Shown: positions 13,198 to 62,150 of the stretch, one piece after another
Position numbering within the stretch: the first letter of the stretch is position 1
Layout of the letters: each line of letters starts with the position of its first letter
NCBI GenBank assembly: GCA_904063045.1
Contig: CAJFCJ010000084.1
Span: 14,384-78,383 of the forward strand
Length of the DNA: 64,000 bases
Direction: 5' to 3'
From: Dimorphilus gyrociliatus
Lineage: Eukaryota; Animalia; Annelida
Notes under the pieces: generated by a model
Database searches by the model: none
Seen by the model: the letters and a program-made list of their open reading frames with translations, nothing else
Told to the model about the DNA's origin: nothing
Position numbers and translations under genes: made by a program

Positions 13198-13852
13198 NNN
13201 NNNNNNNNNNNNNNNNNNNNNNNNNNNNNNNNNNNNNNNNNNNNNNNNNNNNNNNNNNNNNNNNNNNNNNNNNNNNNNNNNNNNNNNNNNNNNNNNNNNN
13301 NNNNNNNNNNNNNNNNNNNNNNNNNNNNNNNNNNNNNNNNNNNNNNNNNNNNNNNNNNNNNNNNNNNNNNNNNNNNNNNNNNNNNNNNNNNNNNNNNNNN
13401 NNNNNNNNNNNNNNNNNNNNNNNNNNNNNNNNNNNNNNNNNNNNNNNNNNNNNNNNNNNNNNNNNNNNNNNNNNNNNNNNNNNNNNNNNNNNNNNNNNNN
13501 NNNNNNNNNNNNNNNNNNNNNNNNNNNNNNNNNNNNNNNNNNNNNNNNNNNNNNNNNNNNNNNNNNNNNNNNNNNNNNNNNNNNNNNNNNNNNNNNNNNN
13601 NNNNNNNNNNNNNNNNNNNNNNNNNNNNNNNNNNNNNNNNNNNNNNNNNNNNNNNNNNNNNNNNNNNNNNNNNNNNNNNNNNNNNNNNNNNNNNNNNNNN
13701 NNNNNNNNNNNNNNNNNNNNNNNNNNNNNNNNNNNNNNNNNNNNNNNNNNNNNNNNNNNNNNNNNNNNNNNNNNNNNNNNNNNNNNNNNNNNNNNNNNNN
13801 NNNNNNNNNNNNNNNNNNNNNNNNNNNNNNNNNNNNNNNNNNNNNNNNNNNN
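13198..13852. other. Assembly gap (655 N)
   Basis: Continuous N run. Confidence 1.
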
Positions 13853-14793: not shown

Positions 14794-16320
14794 TCACTCG
14801 CTATAGATTTTTATTTTGTCAGTGAATTTTAGCCATTGGGTAGTTTCTGAAAATTTGTGTTCAGTTAGATAACAATTGTCAAAACTAACATATCTTAATC
14901 TATCATATGATTGAAAAAGTCCATTGCAAATATAAGAAAATCCATTTCCCATGCTATTATTATTCAGTAAATGTACAATTTCAATTTTAGAACATGCTTT
15001 AAAGAAATTTCCAACACTTTTACTTTGCTCCTCATTTAGGCCACATTCAGTGAAATCAACTTCTGCCAAAGTATTTGATGATTGAATTAATCCGTTGCAA
15101 ATATCTATTAATCCATTTCCCATTTCATTGTTTTTAGAAAAATTGACTACTTCTATCTGAGAGCAATGTTTAAGCAAATTTCCAATGGAATTAGCTTGTT
15201 TAGCAGTTAGTTCACAATTTCCAAAATCAATGCTTTTCAATGTATTTGATGAATTTAAAAGACCATTACAAATGTTCAATAAACCATTTCCCATTTCACT
15301 ATTAAAGTTAAAATTGATCAACTCCAATTTGGAACAATTTTTAAGCATACTTTCAATAGACACACATTGATCTTCACCTATTTCACAATAGCTGATATCA
15401 ATACATCTTAAGGTATTTGATGAACGAACTAGCCTGTGGCAAATGTGTTGTAACAAATTTTTCAAAATTTTGTTTCCACACATATATAAGATTTCAACTT
15501 TAGAACATTTATCCAACACATTTTCAATATTTAAAACTTGACTTTCAGTTAGAAAACACCATTTAAAATAAATACATTTCAGAGTATTTGATGAATGAAT
15601 AAGCCCATCACAAATATTTGATAATCCATTGCCCATTTCTTTGTTACCACTCATAGAAATCTGTTCAATTTTAGAACAGACCTTCAATAGATTTCCAATA
15701 CTGAAAGCTTGACTCTCAGATAGAAAACACCAGCTAAAATCAATATTTTTTAAAGTATTTGAAGACAGTAAGAGTGCATCACAAACTTTCAACAATCCAT
15801 CTCCCATATTTCTGTTCATGCTTAAGTTTATTGTTTCTAATTTAGTACAATTACTTATTATATAACCAATATCTGCAGTTTGAATAACTGTTAGTTTGCA
15901 ATGACAGAAATACAAGTGTCTTAAAGTGTTCATTGAATGAACAAGCCCCTCACAAATCCTAGACAATCCATCACCCATATTTTCATTGGAGCTTAAATTT
16001 ATTGTTTCTATTCCATAACAATTTTCAAGAAATTCTCCAATATCCTTACAATAACTCTTTGTTAGACGGCATTTATAGAAATGGATACACTTTAAAGTAG
16101 TCAAAGATTGACGAAGCGCATTGCAAACTTTAGTGAATTCATTCTTTCTGACCATAGTCCTACTACACATGGAGCAGGTATATATATTATCAATATTGGC
16201 CAGTTGTTGAAAGCATCTGACACAGTGTACATGTTCACAAGACAGTATCTTAACATCTCTTCCTAGAAATGACTCAAGACAAATGGAACATTCCAGAATT
16301 TTCTCCTTATCTATAGACAT
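14794..16320 (-). CDS. Intronless RING-HC finger plus ribonuclease-inhibitor/NLR-type LRR protein (508 aa)
   Basis: CSIC...CEHVHCVRC...CSMC RING at the N-terminus, then about 7.5 copies of a 56-aa (28+28) LRR unit (SNTLKxIDFxxCxL...CSKIExINxSxNxEMGNGL); 168-nt periodicity visible in the DNA; uninterrupted ORF. Confidence 0.92.
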   Translation of the reverse strand: MSIDKEKILECSICLESFLGRDVKILSCEHVHCVRCFQQLANIDNIYTCSMCSRTMVRKNEFTKVCNALRQSLTTLKCIHFYKCRLTKSYCKDIGEFLENCYGIETINLSSNENMGDGLSRICEGLVHSMNTLRHLYFCHCKLTVIQTADIGYIISNCTKLETINLSMNRNMGDGLLKVCDALLLSSNTLKNIDFSWCFLSESQAFSIGNLLKVCSKIEQISMSGNKEMGNGLSNICDGLIHSSNTLKCIYFKWCFLTESQVLNIENVLDKCSKVEILYMCGNKILKNLLQHICHRLVRSSNTLRCIDISYCEIGEDQCVSIESMLKNCSKLELINFNFNSEMGNGLLNICNGLLNSSNTLKSIDFGNCELTAKQANSIGNLLKHCSQIEVVNFSKNNEMGNGLIDICNGLIQSSNTLAEVDFTECGLNEEQSKSVGNFFKACSKIEIVHLLNNNSMGNGFSYICNGLFQSYDRLRYVSFDNCYLTEHKFSETTQWLKFTDKIKIYSE

Positions 16321-16586
16321 TCTTTGCGTTTCTTATAAATGTTTCAAATTTATTGGAGAAGGTTATATTGCAACTGTAACCACGACATGAAGCTTATTGA
16401 GAAGATTATAACCACATTCACCATGTTTACACTGAAGAATAGGTCTAAAATCTCGAGTATTATTTAAGCTCATTGAAAGAGAATTTATGCAAATTGTGTG
16501 AAAAAAAAACATAGTTTTTTTGTTTTTCAAAATAGGGTTATGAAATTGTAATTTCTAACCCTTTATTTATTAAATGTACAGGTTTA

Positions 16587-39895: not shown

Positions 39896-40934
39896 TTACC
39901 TAAAACCAAATCCTAATTTCAAGTCCAATATTTGAATTGAATTTTTTAAAAGAAAATATTGTTGTGTTAATTTTGTTGATAAATTGAAAAATACAATTAT
40001 AATACAAAGTGGATGTTTACAAAATTCTCTTAGATCATTACTACTTTTAAATAGTAATAGAAATTTTGTTTTTAAAAGTTTAACATAACTTTCATTATAT
40101 CCTTTACATCTACAAATTTCTTGTAAACATGATAAATTCTCCATTGGTGTTATACCATCAATTTTAAATATATAATCCAGACATAATTTTAGAAATGGAA
40201 ATTTTAAATTTCTAACAAATATTAATTTTTTAACATTTCCATTTCTAAAATTATTGAGTAGTATATGAAATTTAGAATTAGGATTTTCCATTAATTCATT
40301 TAATTTCATTTTTTGAATACTGCATTTTTAAAATGATATATGCATCCTTGAATTAAAGTGTTTGGGAATGACTTTTGAATAGCTTTCCACAATGCAGCCT
40401 CAAAATCAATCACAACTTTAAAAAACATTCACCAAATTTGTTGAATTTTCTTCAGAAGAATCATCAAGTTCCATCAAACTTTCATTTCGAAATTCCAATG
40501 AAAGTTCAAGCTAAATGTCAAAATAAAATTTTAAAATAATAAAAAATTGAACAAGTGCTATACCTCTTTATTTCCAAATTGATGAACTGTTTTATCATTA
40601 ACAAATGCCTTGACTGTTAAATGTTCAGATCCATGATGATCATCATTTTGCTGAAAATCCATTGCAGTTTCATTTTCATTGTTCTGTTCATTTTCATTTG
40701 CAAGTTCTTTATTATTGACCTGTTCAGTCTCACTGATAAGATCAGTTTCACTGTCCAATTGATTTTCAGTTTTTCAGTTTCAGTAATTAGCTTATTCATT
40801 ACAGGCTGATTTTGTATTTTAAAATTTGATTGCAGTTCAAATAACTGAACCTGACATTTTCTTGTTTTAATATCTTTGCATAAATTGCAGTAACCTTGTC
40901 CTTTAGTTAAATAATAATATATTGAATAAAACAA
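39896..40934 (-). mobile_element. MULE (Mutator-like) transposase-derived remnant
   Basis: VVIDFEAALWKAIQKSFPNTLIQGCIYH (about 40330-40420) is the MULE D-x-E...GC-x-H segment; the first catalytic DGTF block is not seen; frameshifted. Confidence 0.6.
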
Positions 40935-47860: not shown

Positions 47861-48279
47861 ATCCTGTTACTGAAGATAAACGCCAACTAGACTATTCACC
47901 AAATGCAAACAGATGATTGGATATCAGCGACAAACAGTCCCCTAAAGAGGTTGGACTGTTTCATAATGGAACATCAAATTTTGTCGACAACTATTTAGAA
48001 TAGAATGAATTTTATTCAATTTGTGTGAAATACAAATATGAAGGAGCCACTACTAGGTTGCAAGCAAACCAAAGATTTAGTATAATATATCAAAACTGAT
48101 CTGTTCGCTGTTAATTTCACAGAATTTAAAGTATATACTTTTCCTAACAGATAATGAGCTTTAGCACAAACTATGTTAGTTTACAAGAAAGTTTAGCAAA
48201 GTTATGGTCCTTCAGGTGCTTAAACCCTAGTGAATATGTTTGGGTCAAATAAGAACACTATAGAAAAGTAATTTTTACC

Positions 48280-51200
48280 TCAGTCTACACAGTGCTGATC
48301 TCTTTCTACAGTCTCTTTTATCCATTGAAAATTAGGTCCAATCTGTGTAAGAGCCGTGTTCTCAGCTTTACAATTTTCAGGAGAGGAGGTAAAAGCAGTA
48401 ACAGTTGGTCTTGAATTGATATTACAGTTTAGCGGAGTACCAGCAGTTTGCTTTTAGAGAAAAAAAAAGTTTATTCTATTTACCCATAGCTATCAAAAAA
48501 CCTTGCAATACACGTCATTCTTGCTCAAAACGCCTTCACCACATAAAGTGTTTGGAGGTTTAATCTTAAGTGCAGGACTACAATTGTTTGGATTGACAAT
48601 TTCCATTTTCTTTGGGAAAAGCATATAAAGATTCTCTCCATAAGCTGTGGGAAATTTAGGGTTTTATGTGTAAGTGGAGGAATAAGCTAGTAAAAAATTT
48701 GTTTGTTGTATACCGTTTGCAAATCCAGAAAGTGTACATCCTTTTAAGTTTTGGTTAGTGTAATTATATGATGTTTCAGAGATGCATGCTGTCCTAAGTT
48801 TACTTGTACTATAATGTCTTATTTCCAATTTCAGTAATGCAATATCATAATCTGCAGGATTTTTCTCATATTTTGGATGAATAGATGTTTTTATCACAAT
48901 ACCAATGCTTTTCCCACTACTCCTTTCTGGACCATAAAATACTTTCAATTCCTTTTGGCTAAAAAACATTAGTAGAAAAAATACAAAATTTTCTTATTTT
49001 GGAAGGACAGCTGTAGGGTTTTATGTAATAATGTTAAAATTATTGGTATGGATAGCTTTGTAATCCTATGCATAACCCCCAGACAAGTGGCATAAAACCC
49101 TTTATAGTTTTCTTTGCCATATCCAAAATTAATAAACAGCCTCAAAATAGGATCAACTGTCCAAGCAAAAAAAAAATAAACATACTTACCGAAATTTTTT
49201 CACACATGTAGCAGATGAAAGAACAAATCTCTCATGAATCAGTATTCCTGCACAACGGTTATAAGAAACTGAAATTGTTACCTATATTTTGAAGAATTTT
49301 TAAGTCAAATAAACTGGTTTGATATCTATGATACAAACAAGCCAAGGGAAATTATTAGTAAGTGTTATATTATCCTTCTCCCAAATGATTTCAGTGTTGT
49401 CCGTCTTACCACAAGATGGATGATTTAGGCCAATAAGTGGTGGACTGGATTTAACTAAACAAAATTCTCTGTATTTAAAGTTATTTGTATAGTTTCTAAA
49501 TATGTAAAATACCTGACTCAACTGGACATTTAGAATATGTAGACATATGAAAATCATATAGTTTCAATAATTTTACATGGCCTATTTGTTTTACACTTGC
49601 AATCAGTTGGACATAATAGAAAGGAACATCAACATTAGTATAGTGCTTTATTATTTCCTTTCTACATTGAGTCCTAATTCTAATTTGTACATAAGGATTT
49701 CTATAACAAAGAAAAACATAATTTTGAAAGAATAAATAAAACCTTTTTCAAATGATTAGGAAATAAAGTCCAATTCTCCTTGTAAATTTCTGCTTACCTA
49801 AAAACTTGCTTTTTTCCCCTAATGTATAGATCTATATCTGGTGATATTGCATTAGATTGTCCATCCAATGTTCTTATTATTACTTTGAAACTTATACAAT
49901 TTTTTTCTGTTTCATATATTGCAGCTCTGAATGAGGTAATTGTTGTTGGAAAAGGTATTTTTGTTAGATATACACCGCCAACTCCAATAACTTCCGCTGT
50001 AAAGATTAATATAAAAAATAATATTTCTGTAGAGTATTTTTTAAAAGAATAATAATATATTTTGGTTCTGAAGTGAGCTTCAGAGAGCAATGTTTAAGAG
50101 ACATAGTGTGTGTGTGGTGTGAAGTGATTTATGACTAGAAAATAATGCCTATAGGAATGTTTGCAGCTCAAGAAAATACTTACAAGAATATCTCACAAAT
50201 GTAAATGGAGTTGTATCTTGAGTCTTTACAACAGCCCTCCAATCATTATGTTGATAAACTAATAGTAAATTAAATTAATTCTAATTAAGAAGCAGAAATA
50301 TTTTCTATATTGTCAATAATACTGTACAAGTAGGGTTTGAATTATATTCTGACAAACTAATATCATAATTGCAGTTGCTCACTACAGTTATATTGTCAAT
50401 ACCAACATTAATTCTTTCATCATATCCTCTAACATATTTAAATATTAGCTGGAAAAAAAAACAAGCAAAATATGGAAAATGATTAGAATTTAAAAAAAAT
50501 TAATTTATTACTCTAAATTTCTGGATATTATACAATTTCATTGGCAGACAAATCTTTTTCCAGTAGGGATCTTTTGAAGTTTTATCACGACCTTCATAAG
50601 CACCAGCACCAAATATTTCATCATCATGCTCAACTAAGAACATTAGAGGAGAAGTACTATATTCAGAAAATTTTTCTAAAAATACATCAAATTGAATATA
50701 ATTCCTGTCCTTTGCATTGTAAAAAGGTGTTATGAGTAGTGAAACTGTTGATTGTGGAGCAAATTTTGAAATTACGCCAGGGTTAGAAGAAATAACTTAT
50801 TTGGAATTTTATAAAATCTTTGACACTAATTTGCAAAGTATTGGAGTTGAAGGACAATTCGGTATGGGGAAATCTTTCCAAGCGAGTCATCTTTAAAAAA
50901 GCCCTTTTGGAAGATTATCACGAAAATTCAAATCATTCCAAGGTTATGCTCAAATATATTCAAAGACGTTCGTATATCGAAGATATGACTTTAAGGAGCT
51001 TTAATATGGAATCCGTTGTGGAATGTTTAAAAGATGTGTTTACTAGGGAAAGCAACAAACTGCAAATTATACACTTTCAAGATATCATTCTGGAAGAGAT
51101 CACCTGCAAAAAGTTGAATGAGTACTTACCTTATTTGAAACGGTTGAAATCGTTCAAAATGACAAATGTAAAATTGATTGGAAAAGGATTCACTGAACAA

Positions 51201-54095
51201 TGGTTTGGTTTTCAAACTGTAAATAAAACTATTGAACATTTATCAATTGAGAATTGTCCACTGAAGAAGAGCGATTGTGTTGCACTCACCGAAATTTGTA
51301 AAACTTTTACAAACCTCAAATCGTTACATCTGTCCGAAAATGTTTGTCTGAACGACGAAATTGTTCATATTTTGGAACATTTCTATATTCAAAATCATTC
51401 AAAATTTAAAAGTATAAATCTATCGAAGTGTCTGTTGAATTTTCAACATTTCAACATTTTAGACAAACTACTAGCAATCTCCACAAATCTAAATGAATTG
51501 GATTTATCCTATAACACCGATCCTGGAGGAAAGTTTTCCTCCTTATGCAATAGTTTGAATTTAGCCAATAGCGCGTTGAGTATTGTCAAATTGATTGATT
51601 GTCACCTAACCGAAACTAGCTTGGAAAAATTATCAAACCTATTTGAACATTGTAACAATTTAACGGAAGTCAATCTAACCGGAAATAGAATTTTAAAATC
51701 AACTTCCGAGTTAATATTCTCATCGTTAAAAGCTTCTTGTAGATCGTTAAAAGCTTCTTGTAGATCGTTAAAAAAGTTGATATTTTCAAATTGTTCATTA
51801 GAATTGGATAGGAGAACAAACAGTATTGCGAAATTATTGAAAGAATGTTGCAAACTTTAGCTATAACGAAAAGTATAGCAGAGAGGTAATTAAAGGTTTA
51901 AAATCATCATCTATCTTCCTATCAGTGCTTAAACTCAGATCTTGTAACCTCAATCAAGATGATATAAAACTCTTGAATGGTCTATTCATGTACTGTAAAT
52001 ACTTGACTCATCTGGATTTGAGCGAAAATAGGCAACTTGGTGGAAAAATTGCAAATATTTTCCATTCGTTGCATCTCTCTTATTCAAGTTTAAAGATACT
52101 GAAAATTGATTCTTGTAATTTAACAATAAAAAAATGGACAAGATTTGGCGAAATTATTTAACGAGTGCATGAATTTAACGGAAATTAACATTGCTGACAA
52201 TGAAGATTTGCACAAATGCCTTGAAATGATATCCGAATCTTTGGAGAATTGTTCTCATACCATTAAAATATTAAACTTTTCAAACTGTATGATTGATCAA
52301 GAAAATGGAGTAGCGTTGGCGAAACTACTCTACAAATGCGAATATTTGGAAGAGATTAATCCAAGTTTCTCCAGAGAATTGGATCATCGTTACTCGGGAA
52401 TTACAAGTGAAATATTCAAGCGACTTGAAAGTTCAGTTCTGAATTTGAAAGCTATCCAAATTTCTTTCCAACATTTAGACACTGCCGGAAAGAATCAATT
52501 TATTCACTTGTTGGCGAAATGCCTATATCTACGAAAACTGGTAGTAAAAGCGGACGCAAATCAAGAAATAGAGATTAAGTGTAGAACTATTGAAAAGGTG
52601 AAGGCGAAAGAGGAAAGTTATTGGAATATGAAACTTTCTCCATGGATTTTTGATACTCGTAAAGATATCTTTCTCGGCAATTCTCGCGTTATCTTGAACC
52701 ACCAACAAAATCTGACTAGAAACGATAGTCTTTTAGAAACGATACAAGAATTTCATAAAATTCAACTCAGCCAAATCAACTTTCTACCAGTTATCGATGT
52801 GGGTGATGTACCAATATGCTCATCGTTCGATTCGTTTTAAATGCCATTGCTGTTGAGCGAACTCTATCCTCAATCAAACGCCAACTGCCCAAACGAATTA
52901 TGCAACATTCAAAGTTTTGACACTGTGTTTAGAACAAACCACACTACATGCATCATTGGATCAGCTCAGAAAGGTAAGACAACCCACCTAAACAGACTGA
53001 TCTATCTATGGTCCGTTAAAAAATCAATCTTACAAGATATTTTAGTATTGAAAGTTCCCTTTTACGCAATCAATAAGAATAAATCATTTATAGACGATAT
53101 CATAGATTTCAATTATCCAAATAAGGATAAAACTCTATCTTCTTCAATAGAGTCATTTTTGAAAAATACACAAAAAAGGGTGATTTTCTTCATTGATGAC
53201 GGTGATGATTATTTTCAAAATCCTAATTCTATCTTGAACGATTGGTTCAATAAATCAGAAATAGGAAATCATCCAAAATTAATTTGGGTTAGAAATCTTC
53301 ATCGTTTAAATAATTCGTTAAATTCAATTTTTCGTATTAACGGTATTTCTCCAAAAGCAATTTTAAGATTTTTGAGTAATTTTTTAAAACCCAATTTTAC
53401 ACCAAGACAAATTGTGAAATATGAAGAGAAATTCTATAATTGGATTTCAACAGCAAAACAACTTTACAGATTTTGCAGTCATCCTCTCCGAATACTCATT
53501 TGTTATATTCTATTACCAAAGAAATTTAATCAAGAACTCTTCATCTTGGATACATCTGTTGTTTATTTTGTTAAAATATTGGCTGTCGGCTGTTGAAGAT
53601 TATTATTTACAAAAGATCACTTCAAAGTGTTGCCAACAGTTGAAAGTGTTGGTTACGAATAATTTCAAACTATTGTAAATTACTGCTATGTTTTGTGAAA
53701 ACAAAAATTCAAGCCATTCAAAAAATTTCGATATTTTACGAAAAAATGAATACAATTTCTATACAATTTTCATGCCACAATTCCCACTTCCGGTTTATAT
53801 TTGGAGAAGATTACGCCAACTTTTCAATATTTAATACAAAATTTCTATCCCAAATGAAAGAGGTGATGAATGATAAAAGATATCCAACAAGGAAAACAAT
53901 TTCCTTCAACCTATCCAATTTGGATATGACCAATTACAATCTAAAGGAGATTTTACAGAATTTACAATGTGTCCAACTCTCTTGTACGTATGTAATTGTA
54001 ATAGTAAGCAGTAGTTGATGTGGTTGTGTGAAATGGAACACCTGGATTAGGGTTCACCATTCTTATTCTCATATTCAATTTTTCTAACAATGTTT
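48280..54095 (-). CDS. MAM-MAM-trypsin-fold serine protease homologue (catalytically inactive), multi-exon
   Basis: MAM motifs LLITP...QF, VGIDNITV..C and DWRAVV...CISF; protease CGK...FPWLV, RCAGILIHERFVLSSATCV (His to Thr), DYDIALL, QTAGTPLNC (Ser to Ala); most splice phases consistent; stop at 48280-48282; 5' end unresolved. Confidence 0.75.
50796..53987 (+). pseudogene. Degenerate NLR-like segment with LRRs N-terminal to a NACHT NTPase
   Basis: RI-type LRRs 50820-52560; Walker A IIGSAQKGKTT and Walker B VIFFIDDGDD in 52841-53596; helical region to about 53987; several frameshifts and stops; 21-bp tandem duplication near 51727-51768; no introns. Confidence 0.8.
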
Positions 54096-54165
54096 ACAAT
54101 TAAAGTAAATACTAAAAGAAGAAATTTCAATAAATGAGTTATTGGTACAATGCTTAAAACACAGC

Positions 54166-54402
54166 TTAGTTGTCTATTCTACAATAGGTGAAATGTGTCT
54201 TTTTCTCAATTTCGCCGCGTTCTTTAAAGACACTTTCATCAACCGAATTAACTATAATAGCCATAACTGGATTATTTATCGCTTGAACGAATATTGAATA
54301 GCTATAGATACTTGAAAAGTTTAATAACAATGGATCAGTTGTGTGCTTTGAAAGATAGAAAAGGAGTGAGGAAAATACAAAAGCTAGCATCATTATGCAC
54401 AA
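54166..54402 (-). pseudogene. TM6-TM7 fragment of a GPCR related to 58409-59341
   Basis: FVQAINNPVMAIIVN versus LLQATNNPIITILGN. Confidence 0.6.
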
Positions 54403-60095: not shown

Positions 60096-62150
60096 GGGGT
60101 CGACAGAAAACATCCATGAAAGAAAATGTCCATTAAAATAAATTTCATTTAAATATAAATATATGTTGAAAAAGTAAACCTTTGGTAAAAGAATATGTTA
60201 AACATATACTTAATAAATGAAATATTCACAAAAAAAATCACTTAACTTTTCCTATTAGCTTAATTTTTTAGGAATTATATTTCCTTATGGAGCGAAAGAA
60301 AACGTCCATAAAGTGAAAGAAAACATCCATACAGTAAAAGAAAATGTCTATAAACTAAAAGTAAATATCCATGAACTAAAAGAAAACATAAATAAAAATA
60401 AATTTCATTTAAATGTAAATCTATATTGAAAAACAAGTTAATAGAAAACTTTTTATATATGCAACTTTAGGTTTACCATATAAATTGTGTATTGATTATT
60501 TGTAAACAACTTTAAAACAAAGACAAACTATTATTTTCAATAATATAATTCTGAGGAAAGCTGCAGAAGCTGGTTTGCATTAATTTCACCTGTTTTAAAA
60601 TTTTCCCAAATTAAGAAAAGATCTTTTTGCTATAAGTCTTCCTTTGAAGTCTAATTATCTTTCTCTCACTTAAAAGCTTTTTGTACAGATTTATCATGTC
60701 TGCTTCCCTCTTTAACTTATCAATCACTAAATAAAAAGAAACATTTTCTCCAACAATTTTATTCAGCCTTTGATGATAACCTTCCAGATCATTATTTGTC
60801 CTTATGCTTTGATCAAAAACAGACCAAGTCTCTGGAGACCAAAATGTATTTTTTATCCAAGTATTAGACACATAGTCCAACAAATCAGCCATTTTATTTC
60901 CTTTTGTCAGTTGATTTTGAATTTTAGTGAATTGATTTTCAATCATACCATGAGGCAAATATGGCAAAGACATAATCATTCTCATGGATTCCCAAGCTCC
61001 CTGTTTTTTTCTAAATTCCCTGCTATAACCGAGTTCCTTAAACAAAACAAATATTAATTGGATTGTTAAAAATTTTAGAAATTAATAAACCTGAATTTTT
61101 CTAAATATTACCTGAGACCAGTGAAATGAACATCCAGTCAAGACAGCATCAGGCCATATATTTTGTAAAGTTTTCCAAACAGCCTTTTCATAGTCTAAGA
61201 CTATTTTCTTAAGAGCACAATTTTCAGCTAAATCCTTCACAGCCTTAAAAATTTAACATGATTGCTTATTAGTAAGTATATTTATGAAATGTAATTCCTA
61301 CCTGGAAAAGTAGTTTATATGCTCTCTTTTTTTTAGAAGACAGAAAAGAAAAAAGCAATGGAACTTGCTTAAGCTGTCCATTTTTTTTCAAAAATACATG
61401 AATAGAGTACATTTGAATGAAAGGTTCATTGGCAATCTTAAAAGTACCATCAAGGTACCAAATTTTCCCCTTTGACAATAGCTCCAATTGATGATTTGTT
61501 GCAAAGATAACGATCCTCTCATTATTCATATTTATATCCTTCTTTAAAAATTCAGGAGGAATGAATGTCATATTCAGCTCAAAGTTTTTATCATTGGGTA
61601 CAATAGGCCTGTTCTTCCTTCTATTCCAATTTGCCACTTCTTTACAATTAGTTATATTTGGTAAGTTTGAAATACTAGAATACTTGACAAGAACATTTTC
61701 AGCAATTCTTTTACCTGAAGAATTTATATCACCAGAACAATTGTCTTTGATTTCATTTCTTATACGAATCCTGGTTTCTAAATTTTTTATTGGTGAATGA
61801 CAATGAATGTTTGTCCCAATTGCAAAATTGCTTCCTTTTTGATTGATGCTTGCTTTACATTTTCTTTTTTTGCTTCTGACAGAACAAGTCCATACAGTAG
61901 TTGTTTTTGTTTTTAATTTGATAGTATATGAAAAACCTTTGTGAAAAAGTAAGTCTTTGCCTTTTTGACTTCCATTTGGCAGAATTTTAAAATGAAATTG
62001 TCAGAAGAATTTTCTTTGGCAGATGTTTCACTTTCAAAAGATTCTTCCTCAATTTTTTCAGATTCTATATATGCATTTTGAATTGTTTCAAAATTTTCAA
62101 CTTCAATTTCATAATAATTATAATTTTTTTATGGAATTCAGGTGGTAAAT
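60096..62150 (-). mobile_element. MULE DNA transposon: FLYWCH-like finger plus DDE transposase with two introns; one terminus at 60096
   Basis: WTCSVR..CKA..HCH; WYLDGTF; VLDYEKAVW...GCSFHWSQ; RTNNDLEGYH. Phase-0 introns at 61301-61244 and 61090-61037; one N-terminal frameshift near 61990; TIR-like GGGGTCGACAGAAAACATCC at 60096; 21-bp subterminal repeats at 60295-60395. Confidence 0.88.

Follow-up and report, generated by a model that had tools for sequence, protein, structure and literature searches.

This study concerns a 3,192-nt interval in the genome of Dimorphilus gyrociliatus in which a truncated NLR gene lies antisense to DgyrCDS14837 (CAD5126796.1, P0001), a minus-strand gene encoding a MAM-like and inactive trypsin-like protein. 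The window is the whole stretch of DNA that was analysed, 64,000 nt long (contig C84:14384-78383, from a 78-kb contig of a 78-Mb assembly with 30% G+C), and positions are those of the window unless a contig is named. The interval separates the annotated part of the host gene from two putative upstream coding pieces, and the locus is organized as follows.

48283–50643, minus strand: public model DgyrCDS14837 (P0001, 459 aa), 10 exons when P0001 is mapped back; tail of MAM-like domain 1, second MAM-like region and trypsin-like domain.
48283–49454, minus strand: trypsin-like domain, a serine-protease homologue.
50328–50448, minus strand: exon C, with the MAM C-terminal motif LIFKYVRGYDERINVGIDNITVVSNC, ending at a GTACAG donor.
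50512–50795, minus strand: exon B, two split-codon bases, then ISSNPG...SLLITPFYN...WKKICLPMKLYNIQKFR.
50796–53987, minus strand: the interval, 3,192 nt, GTACAAG...AATAAG on the host strand, phase 1.
53988–54083, minus strand: putative exon A, reading ..NPNPGVPFHTTTSTTAYYYNYI, its last base being part of the split codon.
54084–54233, minus strand: putative 150-nt intron predicted from the sequence, GTGTCT...TTGTTAG, within the 57–231-nt range of the host.
54234–54393, minus strand: putative first exon, with ATG at 54393, a hydrophobic signal-peptide-like stretch and the donor A/GTGTCT in phase 1.

Host gene and its putative upstream coding pieces

Mapping of P0001 to the minus strand gave nine annotated introns, all GT-AG and 57–231 nt long. 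The protein contains a trypsin domain (Pfam Trypsin, E 1.9e-13) from which the catalytic His and Ser are missing (SSATC and QTAGTP stand at those sites), and its very N-terminus matches positions 110–157 of Pfam MAM, the last third of the domain (14.8 bits; cut-off, 26.4). Because P0001 has neither a signal peptide nor the first part of the MAM-like domain, upstream coding sequence is or was needed—it would be odd for a protein to begin in mid-domain and have no signal peptide. The Met with which the public model begins (50643) lies inside exon B, and the MAM collinearity of exon B extends a further 50 residues upstream; the frame of exon B closes at 50797–50799, so that a splice or a break is needed at ~50796. 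Judging from the sequence, the public model probably mis-splices at 48804, where it exits the trypsin exon 31 residues short of the end of the Pfam trypsin alignment (..ACISETSY..GCTLSGFANG). Since the model is imperfect at this exon, its downstream start would be weak evidence against splicing of the interval. The lack of a signal peptide in P0001 is also why we infer a first exon at 54234–54393.

The MAM identity of the flanking pieces was assessed with Pfam MAM (PF00629) and with an own-genome profile built from ten MAM domains of the D. gyrociliatus assembly, each exon being searched by itself rather than as a joined exon A–exon B query. Exon C matched the C-terminus of the own-genome profile (positions 135–163, E 0.008) and exon B was collinear with positions 61–130 (shuffle p 0.011); exon A (shuffle p 0.29) found its best placement at 45–49, which is where collinearity predicts it. 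By eye, GVPFHTT...AYYYNYI of exon A, continued by ISSNPG of exon B, parallels tGP..D.T...GYYIYVE-ASNSKKG of MAM domains without a gap across the junction. The N-terminal MAM cysteines (C.FE..C) are absent, the putative N-terminal stretch reading LNFSSIYSY, and the C-terminal Cys is kept in SNC. A preliminary description of this DNA, made from the letters alone, had proposed that removal of the interval rebuilds a MAM-like motif; by eye the join is collinear with MAM domains and exon B aligns with the own-genome profile, whereas exon A is not MAM by any hidden Markov model (HMM). The description's assignment of 53988–54095 to MAM was not upheld, as this stretch had no Pfam match and a shuffle p of 0.29 against the own-genome profile. 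This is formally an outcome that the description had itself named as refuting its proposal, in a test that has little power on 31–35 residues.

Close relatives of the host gene were sought in the assembly and among proteins. When the assembly was searched exon by exon, the host exons returned self-matches only, and P0001 found just isolated copies of the last exon on contig C64 together with distant MAM and trypsin genes. A phmmer search with exon B against 1.8 billion representatives identified P0001 as the sole true relative, the rest being spurious bacterial repeat proteins. The copies on contig C64 (C64:52000-71999; L052, L053) are two inverted copies of the last host exon and its 3′ flank (82% nucleotide identity), each fused directly to 57 nt of an upstream intron–exon edge (89%), with an internal 0.8-kb deletion; they correspond to window positions 48131–48446 and 49271–49327 and are DNA-level gene-fragment duplicates.

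Antisense NLR fragment and its extent

On the plus strand, the interval reads as consecutive pieces of an NLR gene, given here with their positions in a profile of the paralogues described below.

50796–50894, plus strand: left edge of the NLR frame, 33 open codons, no detectable paralogue similarity.
50895–51857, plus strand: LRR part 1, profile 919–1226, 135 bits; the frame ends at TAG, 51858–51860.
51722–51763, plus strand: within the LRR part, 21 nt (7 codons) perfectly duplicated in tandem and in frame.
51868–52134, plus strand: LRR piece in a second frame, profile 1549–1637, 47.9 bits.
52133–52840, plus strand: LRR and linker piece in a third frame, profile 1580–1814, 76.5 bits.
52841–53593, plus strand: NACHT NTPase module with Walker A GSAQKGKTT and Walker B FFIDDGDD, profile 1829–2077, 141.6 bits.
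53583–53997, plus strand: decayed post-NACHT region in two further frames, robust only to ~53961.

The NACHT domain (PF05729) was detected at 52841–53593 with E 6e-10 and 39.6 bits (cut-off, 26.7). Pfam LRR_6 and LRR_1 remained sub-threshold in the block, and its LRR status comes from strong alignment to the LRR blocks of paralogues. The nearest relatives are three intronless open frames of 2,447–2,491 codons on contigs C128, C103 and C54, each laid out as a NACHT (~110–330), a long LRR block, a second NACHT (~1830–2080) and terminal LRRs. These double-NLR paralogues lie at the following loci.

L037, C128:50500-60499.
L038, C103:28000-37999 (open reading frame L038:2533-9873:-).
L039, C54:33200-43199.

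The three intact paralogues are 47–59% identical to one another, and the block is 27–36% identical to any relative. As aligned with them, the block is an internal piece of a ~2,450-residue double NLR, collinear with residues ~920–2080 and taking in LRR-block sequence and, after it, the second NACHT, the counterpart of its own NACHT; neither the first ~900 residues of its relatives nor their C-terminal LRRs are represented. The LRRs precede the NACHT because the piece is internal to a NACHT-LRR-NACHT-LRR protein, and an inverted NLR architecture was rejected on this ground. The fragment is dead by its lesions: there are one in-frame stop codon (52838–52840) that the paralogues do not have, four frame changes (near 51860, 52130, 53590 and 53640) and the 21-nt duplication; segments have been deleted internally, with a loss of ~320 profile positions from LRR part 1 to the second-frame LRR piece, and both parental ends are gone. 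Frames of 354, 231 and 251 codons persist, far above chance at 7% stops per codon, so that decay has been recent or has mostly consisted of few events.

The fragment is single-copy. Searching the whole assembly with 50596–54187 returned the locus itself only and no second copy, donor locus or empty allele at the DNA level; the NLR source was traced as a family at the protein level, at the 27–36% identity given above. The search for a donor thus recovered the family but no DNA-level donor in the assembly. Nor does the window hold the rest of the parent NLR gene, its other NACHT piece (39929–40300) being unrelated.

Similarity to the paralogues is solid over 50895–53584. To the right of this, from 53585 to ~53997, it is weak (hhalign E 0.003 and 0.008; shuffle p 0.029 and 0.034): LSAVEDYYLQK (53583–53621) resembles the paralogue LSSIERYYLKK, and a 106-column alignment matches NYNLKEILQNL..SCT with FYNLK..TNM..NCT, ending in a Cys-Thr pair. 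Read on the opposite strand, the Cys-Thr codons TGT ACG (53983–53988) give the proposed donor GTACA; if this final match is real, that donor corresponds to NLR codons (TGT-AC) in antisense. On the left, similarity begins at 50895–50919 and the first 33–41 codons match no paralogue (shuffle p 0.58). The chance that they would be open, at 7% stops per codon, is ~0.09 for 33 codons and ~0.05 for 41, the number before the hhalign start at 50919. These left 33 codons might represent a variable linker of the NLR, or else what is left of an older intron, and base composition does not discriminate between an old intron and an NLR-derived flank. The interval is therefore certainly NLR over 84% of its length and possibly over ~97%, leaving at most 99 nt on the acceptor side and ~26–40 nt on the donor side. 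The preliminary description had NLR-like coding running from edge to edge, which holds over the solid stretch and, weakly, as far as ~53997, but not over the left 99 bases, which show no similarity.

Other double-NLR copies and gene fragments were found in the assembly and in the window. Two members of the family are degraded: L040 (C54:62000-70641) is a full-length double-NLR copy broken up over ~12 frames that reaches the contig end, and L041 (C36:180000-189999) is a partial copy (profile 497–2160) and the nearest relative of the LRR part of the block (36%). In the window, a long open frame at 14797–16332 (minus strand) aligns with LRR sequence of the double-NLR profile over four stretches that overlap, with no NACHT match. 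The NACHT fragment at 39929–40300 (minus strand) is a C-terminal one (profile 1950–2071, 92 bits), and adjoins a MULE transposase remnant at 40309–40428 (minus strand; 40 residues, PF10551 E 2.6e-5, just sub-threshold); a second MULE-like piece lies at 61272–61637 (minus strand). These arrangements hint at a possible spread of gene fragments in this region by way of Mutator-like elements. MULE-type remnants thus occur in the window, and none was found at the 50796–53987 block.

Predicted splice boundaries, possible intron origin and rival explanations

On the host strand, the interval begins with G-T at 53987–53986 (tac/GTACAAG) and ends with A-G at 50797–50796 (AATAAG/tta), the terminal dinucleotides of a U2-type intron. 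The upstream frame, with codons counted from 54030, has a single base left over (53988), and two bases (50795–50794) open the downstream frame, so the join is in phase 1 and in frame. Within ~50 nt there are five stop-free in-frame GT-AG pairs, of which 53987/50796 alone retains every flanking domain-like residue. On the plus strand, a TAA at 50793–50795 directly precedes the NLR frame, which is therefore open from exactly 50796. Weak sites comparable to those of the interval occur in accepted introns of the host, namely the GTACAG donor of the public model at 50327 and one AAG acceptor. No target-site duplication, terminal inverted repeat or poly-A was found at the edges, nor any direct repeat flanking both junctions; the sole near-terminal inverted pair (50805–50819 and 53948–53962) lies inside coding-like sequence. 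On all these points—the GTACAA (53987) and AATAAG (50796) boundaries with their in-frame join, the NLR-like frame open from 50796, the weak GTACAG donor used elsewhere by the host, and the lack of transposon or poly-A hallmarks—the preliminary description proved correct.

Three further possibilities were rejected. Pairing of the two intron ends in RNA gave a duplex of -16.7 kcal/mol, which 19–29% of controls equalled; a U12-type intron was discarded on a misfit of the donor, judged by eye; and a DNA transposon insertion was dismissed for want of terminal inverted repeats and of a target-site duplication.

The reading that we favour, and to which we would give an even chance, is that an NLR fragment sits antisense in the first, degenerate MAM-like domain of DgyrCDS14837 and that the interval is now an oversized predicted intron with weak sites, joining exon A to exon B. 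A 3.2-kb internal piece of a double NLR, comprising the LRR block, the second NACHT and part of what lies behind it, would have been inserted antisense into the host gene, most likely captured as a DNA fragment when a break was repaired by end joining in this NLR-rich and fragment-rich region. The lack of a target-site duplication, terminal repeat and poly-A together with the single copy fits end-joining capture rather than transposition. Thereafter two origins are conceivable, about equally probable: the splice sites may have come with the insertion, with the donor formed by the antisense of the NLR Cys-Thr codons (intron birth), or a small intron may already have been present and then been enlarged. 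Splicing of the interval today is accordingly evenly poised, the probability dividing equally between a newly created intron and an enlarged older one, and the birth of an intron from an NLR fragment captured antisense in a coding exon, at 3.2 kb in a genome that is otherwise losing introns and has a median of 66 bp, can be proposed only tentatively.

Comparison with other MAM units bears on whether the insertion entered an exon. The nearest detectable relative of the host, a multi-MAM, trypsin-like gene on contig C14, has introns at profile positions ~44–46 and ~131–137, or none, depending on the unit. The host exon B–exon C junction coincides with the second of these positions, and the second MAM-like region of the host has an intron at the first (~44–46) and a private one near 105. 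Exon A reads straight through 44–46, and the block stands at profile ~55, a position at which no intron was found among the C14 units, host domain 2 and ten intronless units, all of them distant MAM units. Since no examined MAM unit has an intron at ~55, insertion into an exon is favoured. The preliminary description had suggested a check of paralogues or orthologues for an uninterrupted exon; no close paralogue or orthologue was found in the assembly or the protein collections, and the distant MAM units, which lack an intron at ~55, differ among themselves in intron position. In favour of an enlarged older intron, the leftover flanks (at most 99 nt and ~26–40 nt) would sum to a normal host intron of 57–231 nt. 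The earlier proposal that a foreign coding fragment landed in an exon and is tolerated as an intron is thus partly supported, by an antisense, truncated and degraded NLR that is foreign to the host, by phase-compatible GT...AG ends, by the absence of an intron at this place from every examined MAM unit and by the need for upstream coding sequence.

Several observations weigh against a spliced insertion. The donor agrees with the consensus at -2, +1, +2 and +3 only, and +5 is not G; the acceptor, AAG, follows a tract poor in pyrimidines (9/20), and both sites are at the weak end of the nine introns of the host gene. The interval is 48× the median intron of the species (66 bp) and 14–56× the other host introns, and D. 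gyrociliatus is reported to splice short introns most efficiently (PMC7854359, which also gives the median). In the public annotation the gene begins only after the block, at 50643. No exon piece matches Pfam MAM—a genome-wide scan gave 116 matches, none of them on this contig—and the first exon has neither a Pfam match nor a MAM signal. Word-indexed protein searches with exon B, P0001 and the NACHT frame found nothing new, neither an orthologue nor a transcript-derived protein. Intron positions in MAM units vary (~45, 105 and 134), which weakens the argument for insertion into an exon. We also placed random 3,192-nt antisense paralogue pieces in intronless MAM exons: in these simulations, stop-free in-frame GT...AG ends arose flush with the insert in 0.1% of cases, in 3% when a distance of up to 3 nt was allowed, in 9% with up to 6 nt and in 16% with up to 9 nt. 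As chance GT-AG ends thus occur in 3–16% of cases at the available resolution, the edge match is suggestive rather than compelling.

Much of this would also be expected if the insertion simply broke the gene, which we regard as possible though doubtful. The NLR piece would then sit in a coding exon without being removed, the upstream pieces would be stranded relics and the GT...AG ends a coincidence of the simulated frequency, and DgyrCDS14837 as annotated could, with equal doubt, be a 5′-truncated remnant that has not yet decayed. The weak splice sites and the great length of the interval speak for such a break, as do a public model that starts at an internal Met and has only a domain tail and no signal peptide, the lack of a transcript-derived protein in the protein searches, and the other scattered gene fragments in the region and the genome. 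The host is moreover lineage-specific, with no orthologue found, and has lost the catalytic His/Ser and the N-terminal MAM cysteines, so that the gene may be dispensable. Set against this are the ends themselves, which are the pair that spares every domain-like residue, and the distribution of lesions: the host coding sequence, ~1.6 kb in 12 putative exons, has no stop and no frameshift and all nine annotated introns retain GT-AG, whereas the block has at least five lesions; under equal neutral decay a lesion-free host would have a probability of ~0.07, provided that the lesions of the block post-date the insertion.

It is unlikely that there was no split exon at all, exon A and the signal-peptide-like open reading frame being chance frames and the NLR piece a flanking pseudogene, the host having lost its original 5′ part when a rearrangement introduced the NLR piece, or else beginning downstream. 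Both upstream frames are short (35 and 77 codons) in a genome of 70% A+T, give no significant MAM or Pfam signal and are unused by the public annotation. Exon A, however, lies directly at the end of NLR similarity, on the correct strand and in the correct phase; it continues into exon B in the gapless by-eye match to MAM domains, its best (non-significant) HMM placement falls at the expected 45–49, and a hydrophobic N-terminal open reading frame lies ~150 nt further upstream. An assembly artefact, the NLR piece having been put into the gene through chimerism of a long read or collapse of an NLR repeat, seems very improbable. The contig is short (78 kb), NLR-rich and interrupted by a 655-N gap (13198–13852), and the NLR regions of the assembly lie on many small contigs; but there are no Ns near the junctions, the assembly holds no second copy of the fragment to mis-place, and chimeric joining would not have put both junctions, as here, into a single codon of one gene. 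We give the least credence to a functional NLR-type gene nested antisense in a host intron: its three long open frames are far beyond chance, but reading through the block would require four frame changes and passage of one stop, the first ~900 residues and the C-terminal LRRs of its relatives are missing, and no public protein of 138–439 aa matches the block.

Comparison with known introns and NLR clusters

Were 53988 joined to 50795 in RNA and an uninterrupted exon present in a related strain or species, the locus would show, still readably, how a fragment of a host gene gave rise to an intron, and this in a compact genome adapted to very short introns. Otherwise it would be an ordinary intronic pseudogene fragment or a recently broken gene, and would matter only for the annotation of DgyrCDS14837. 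To our knowledge, readable sources of new introns are rare, and most of those known are transposon-derived or are short Daphnia introns ascribed to break repair; the present locus is a single case of a known kind.

The favoured reading resembles ordinary intron enlargement in that a large intron would consist mostly of a dead antisense gene fragment, with leftover flanks of normal intron size; it differs in that no examined MAM unit has an intron there, the NLR frame is open to the left edge and weak similarity reaches the donor. As in introner elements and DNA-transposon introns, the insertion would be tolerated through splice signals at or near its ends; unlike transposon-derived introns, it has no terminal inverted repeats or target-site duplication, is single-copy and carries host NLR coding content from one edge to near the other. 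The source family resembles birth-and-death NLR clusters, with a NACHT bearing Walker A/B motifs, LRRs of the ribonuclease-inhibitor type and relatives among which are intact genes, partial copies and a full-length pseudogene with frameshifts. Unlike the usual clusters, the parent family is a 2,450-residue intronless tandem double NLR, and this copy is lodged inside another gene.

The closest parallel is offered by the intron gains of Daphnia pulex, among them one from mitochondrial 16S DNA (PMC3443670; PMC4202315, PMC3020277), for which end-joining capture is the proposed route (PMC3443670). There, as here, non-transposon foreign DNA stands in coding sequence, has GT...AG edges and restores the frame on removal. 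The Daphnia introns are short, often have short direct repeats, are polymorphic and are spliced, whereas the interval in DgyrCDS14837 is a 3.2-kb nuclear gene fragment with no flanking repeat, no empty allele in the assembly, no orthologue found and splicing that is predicted.

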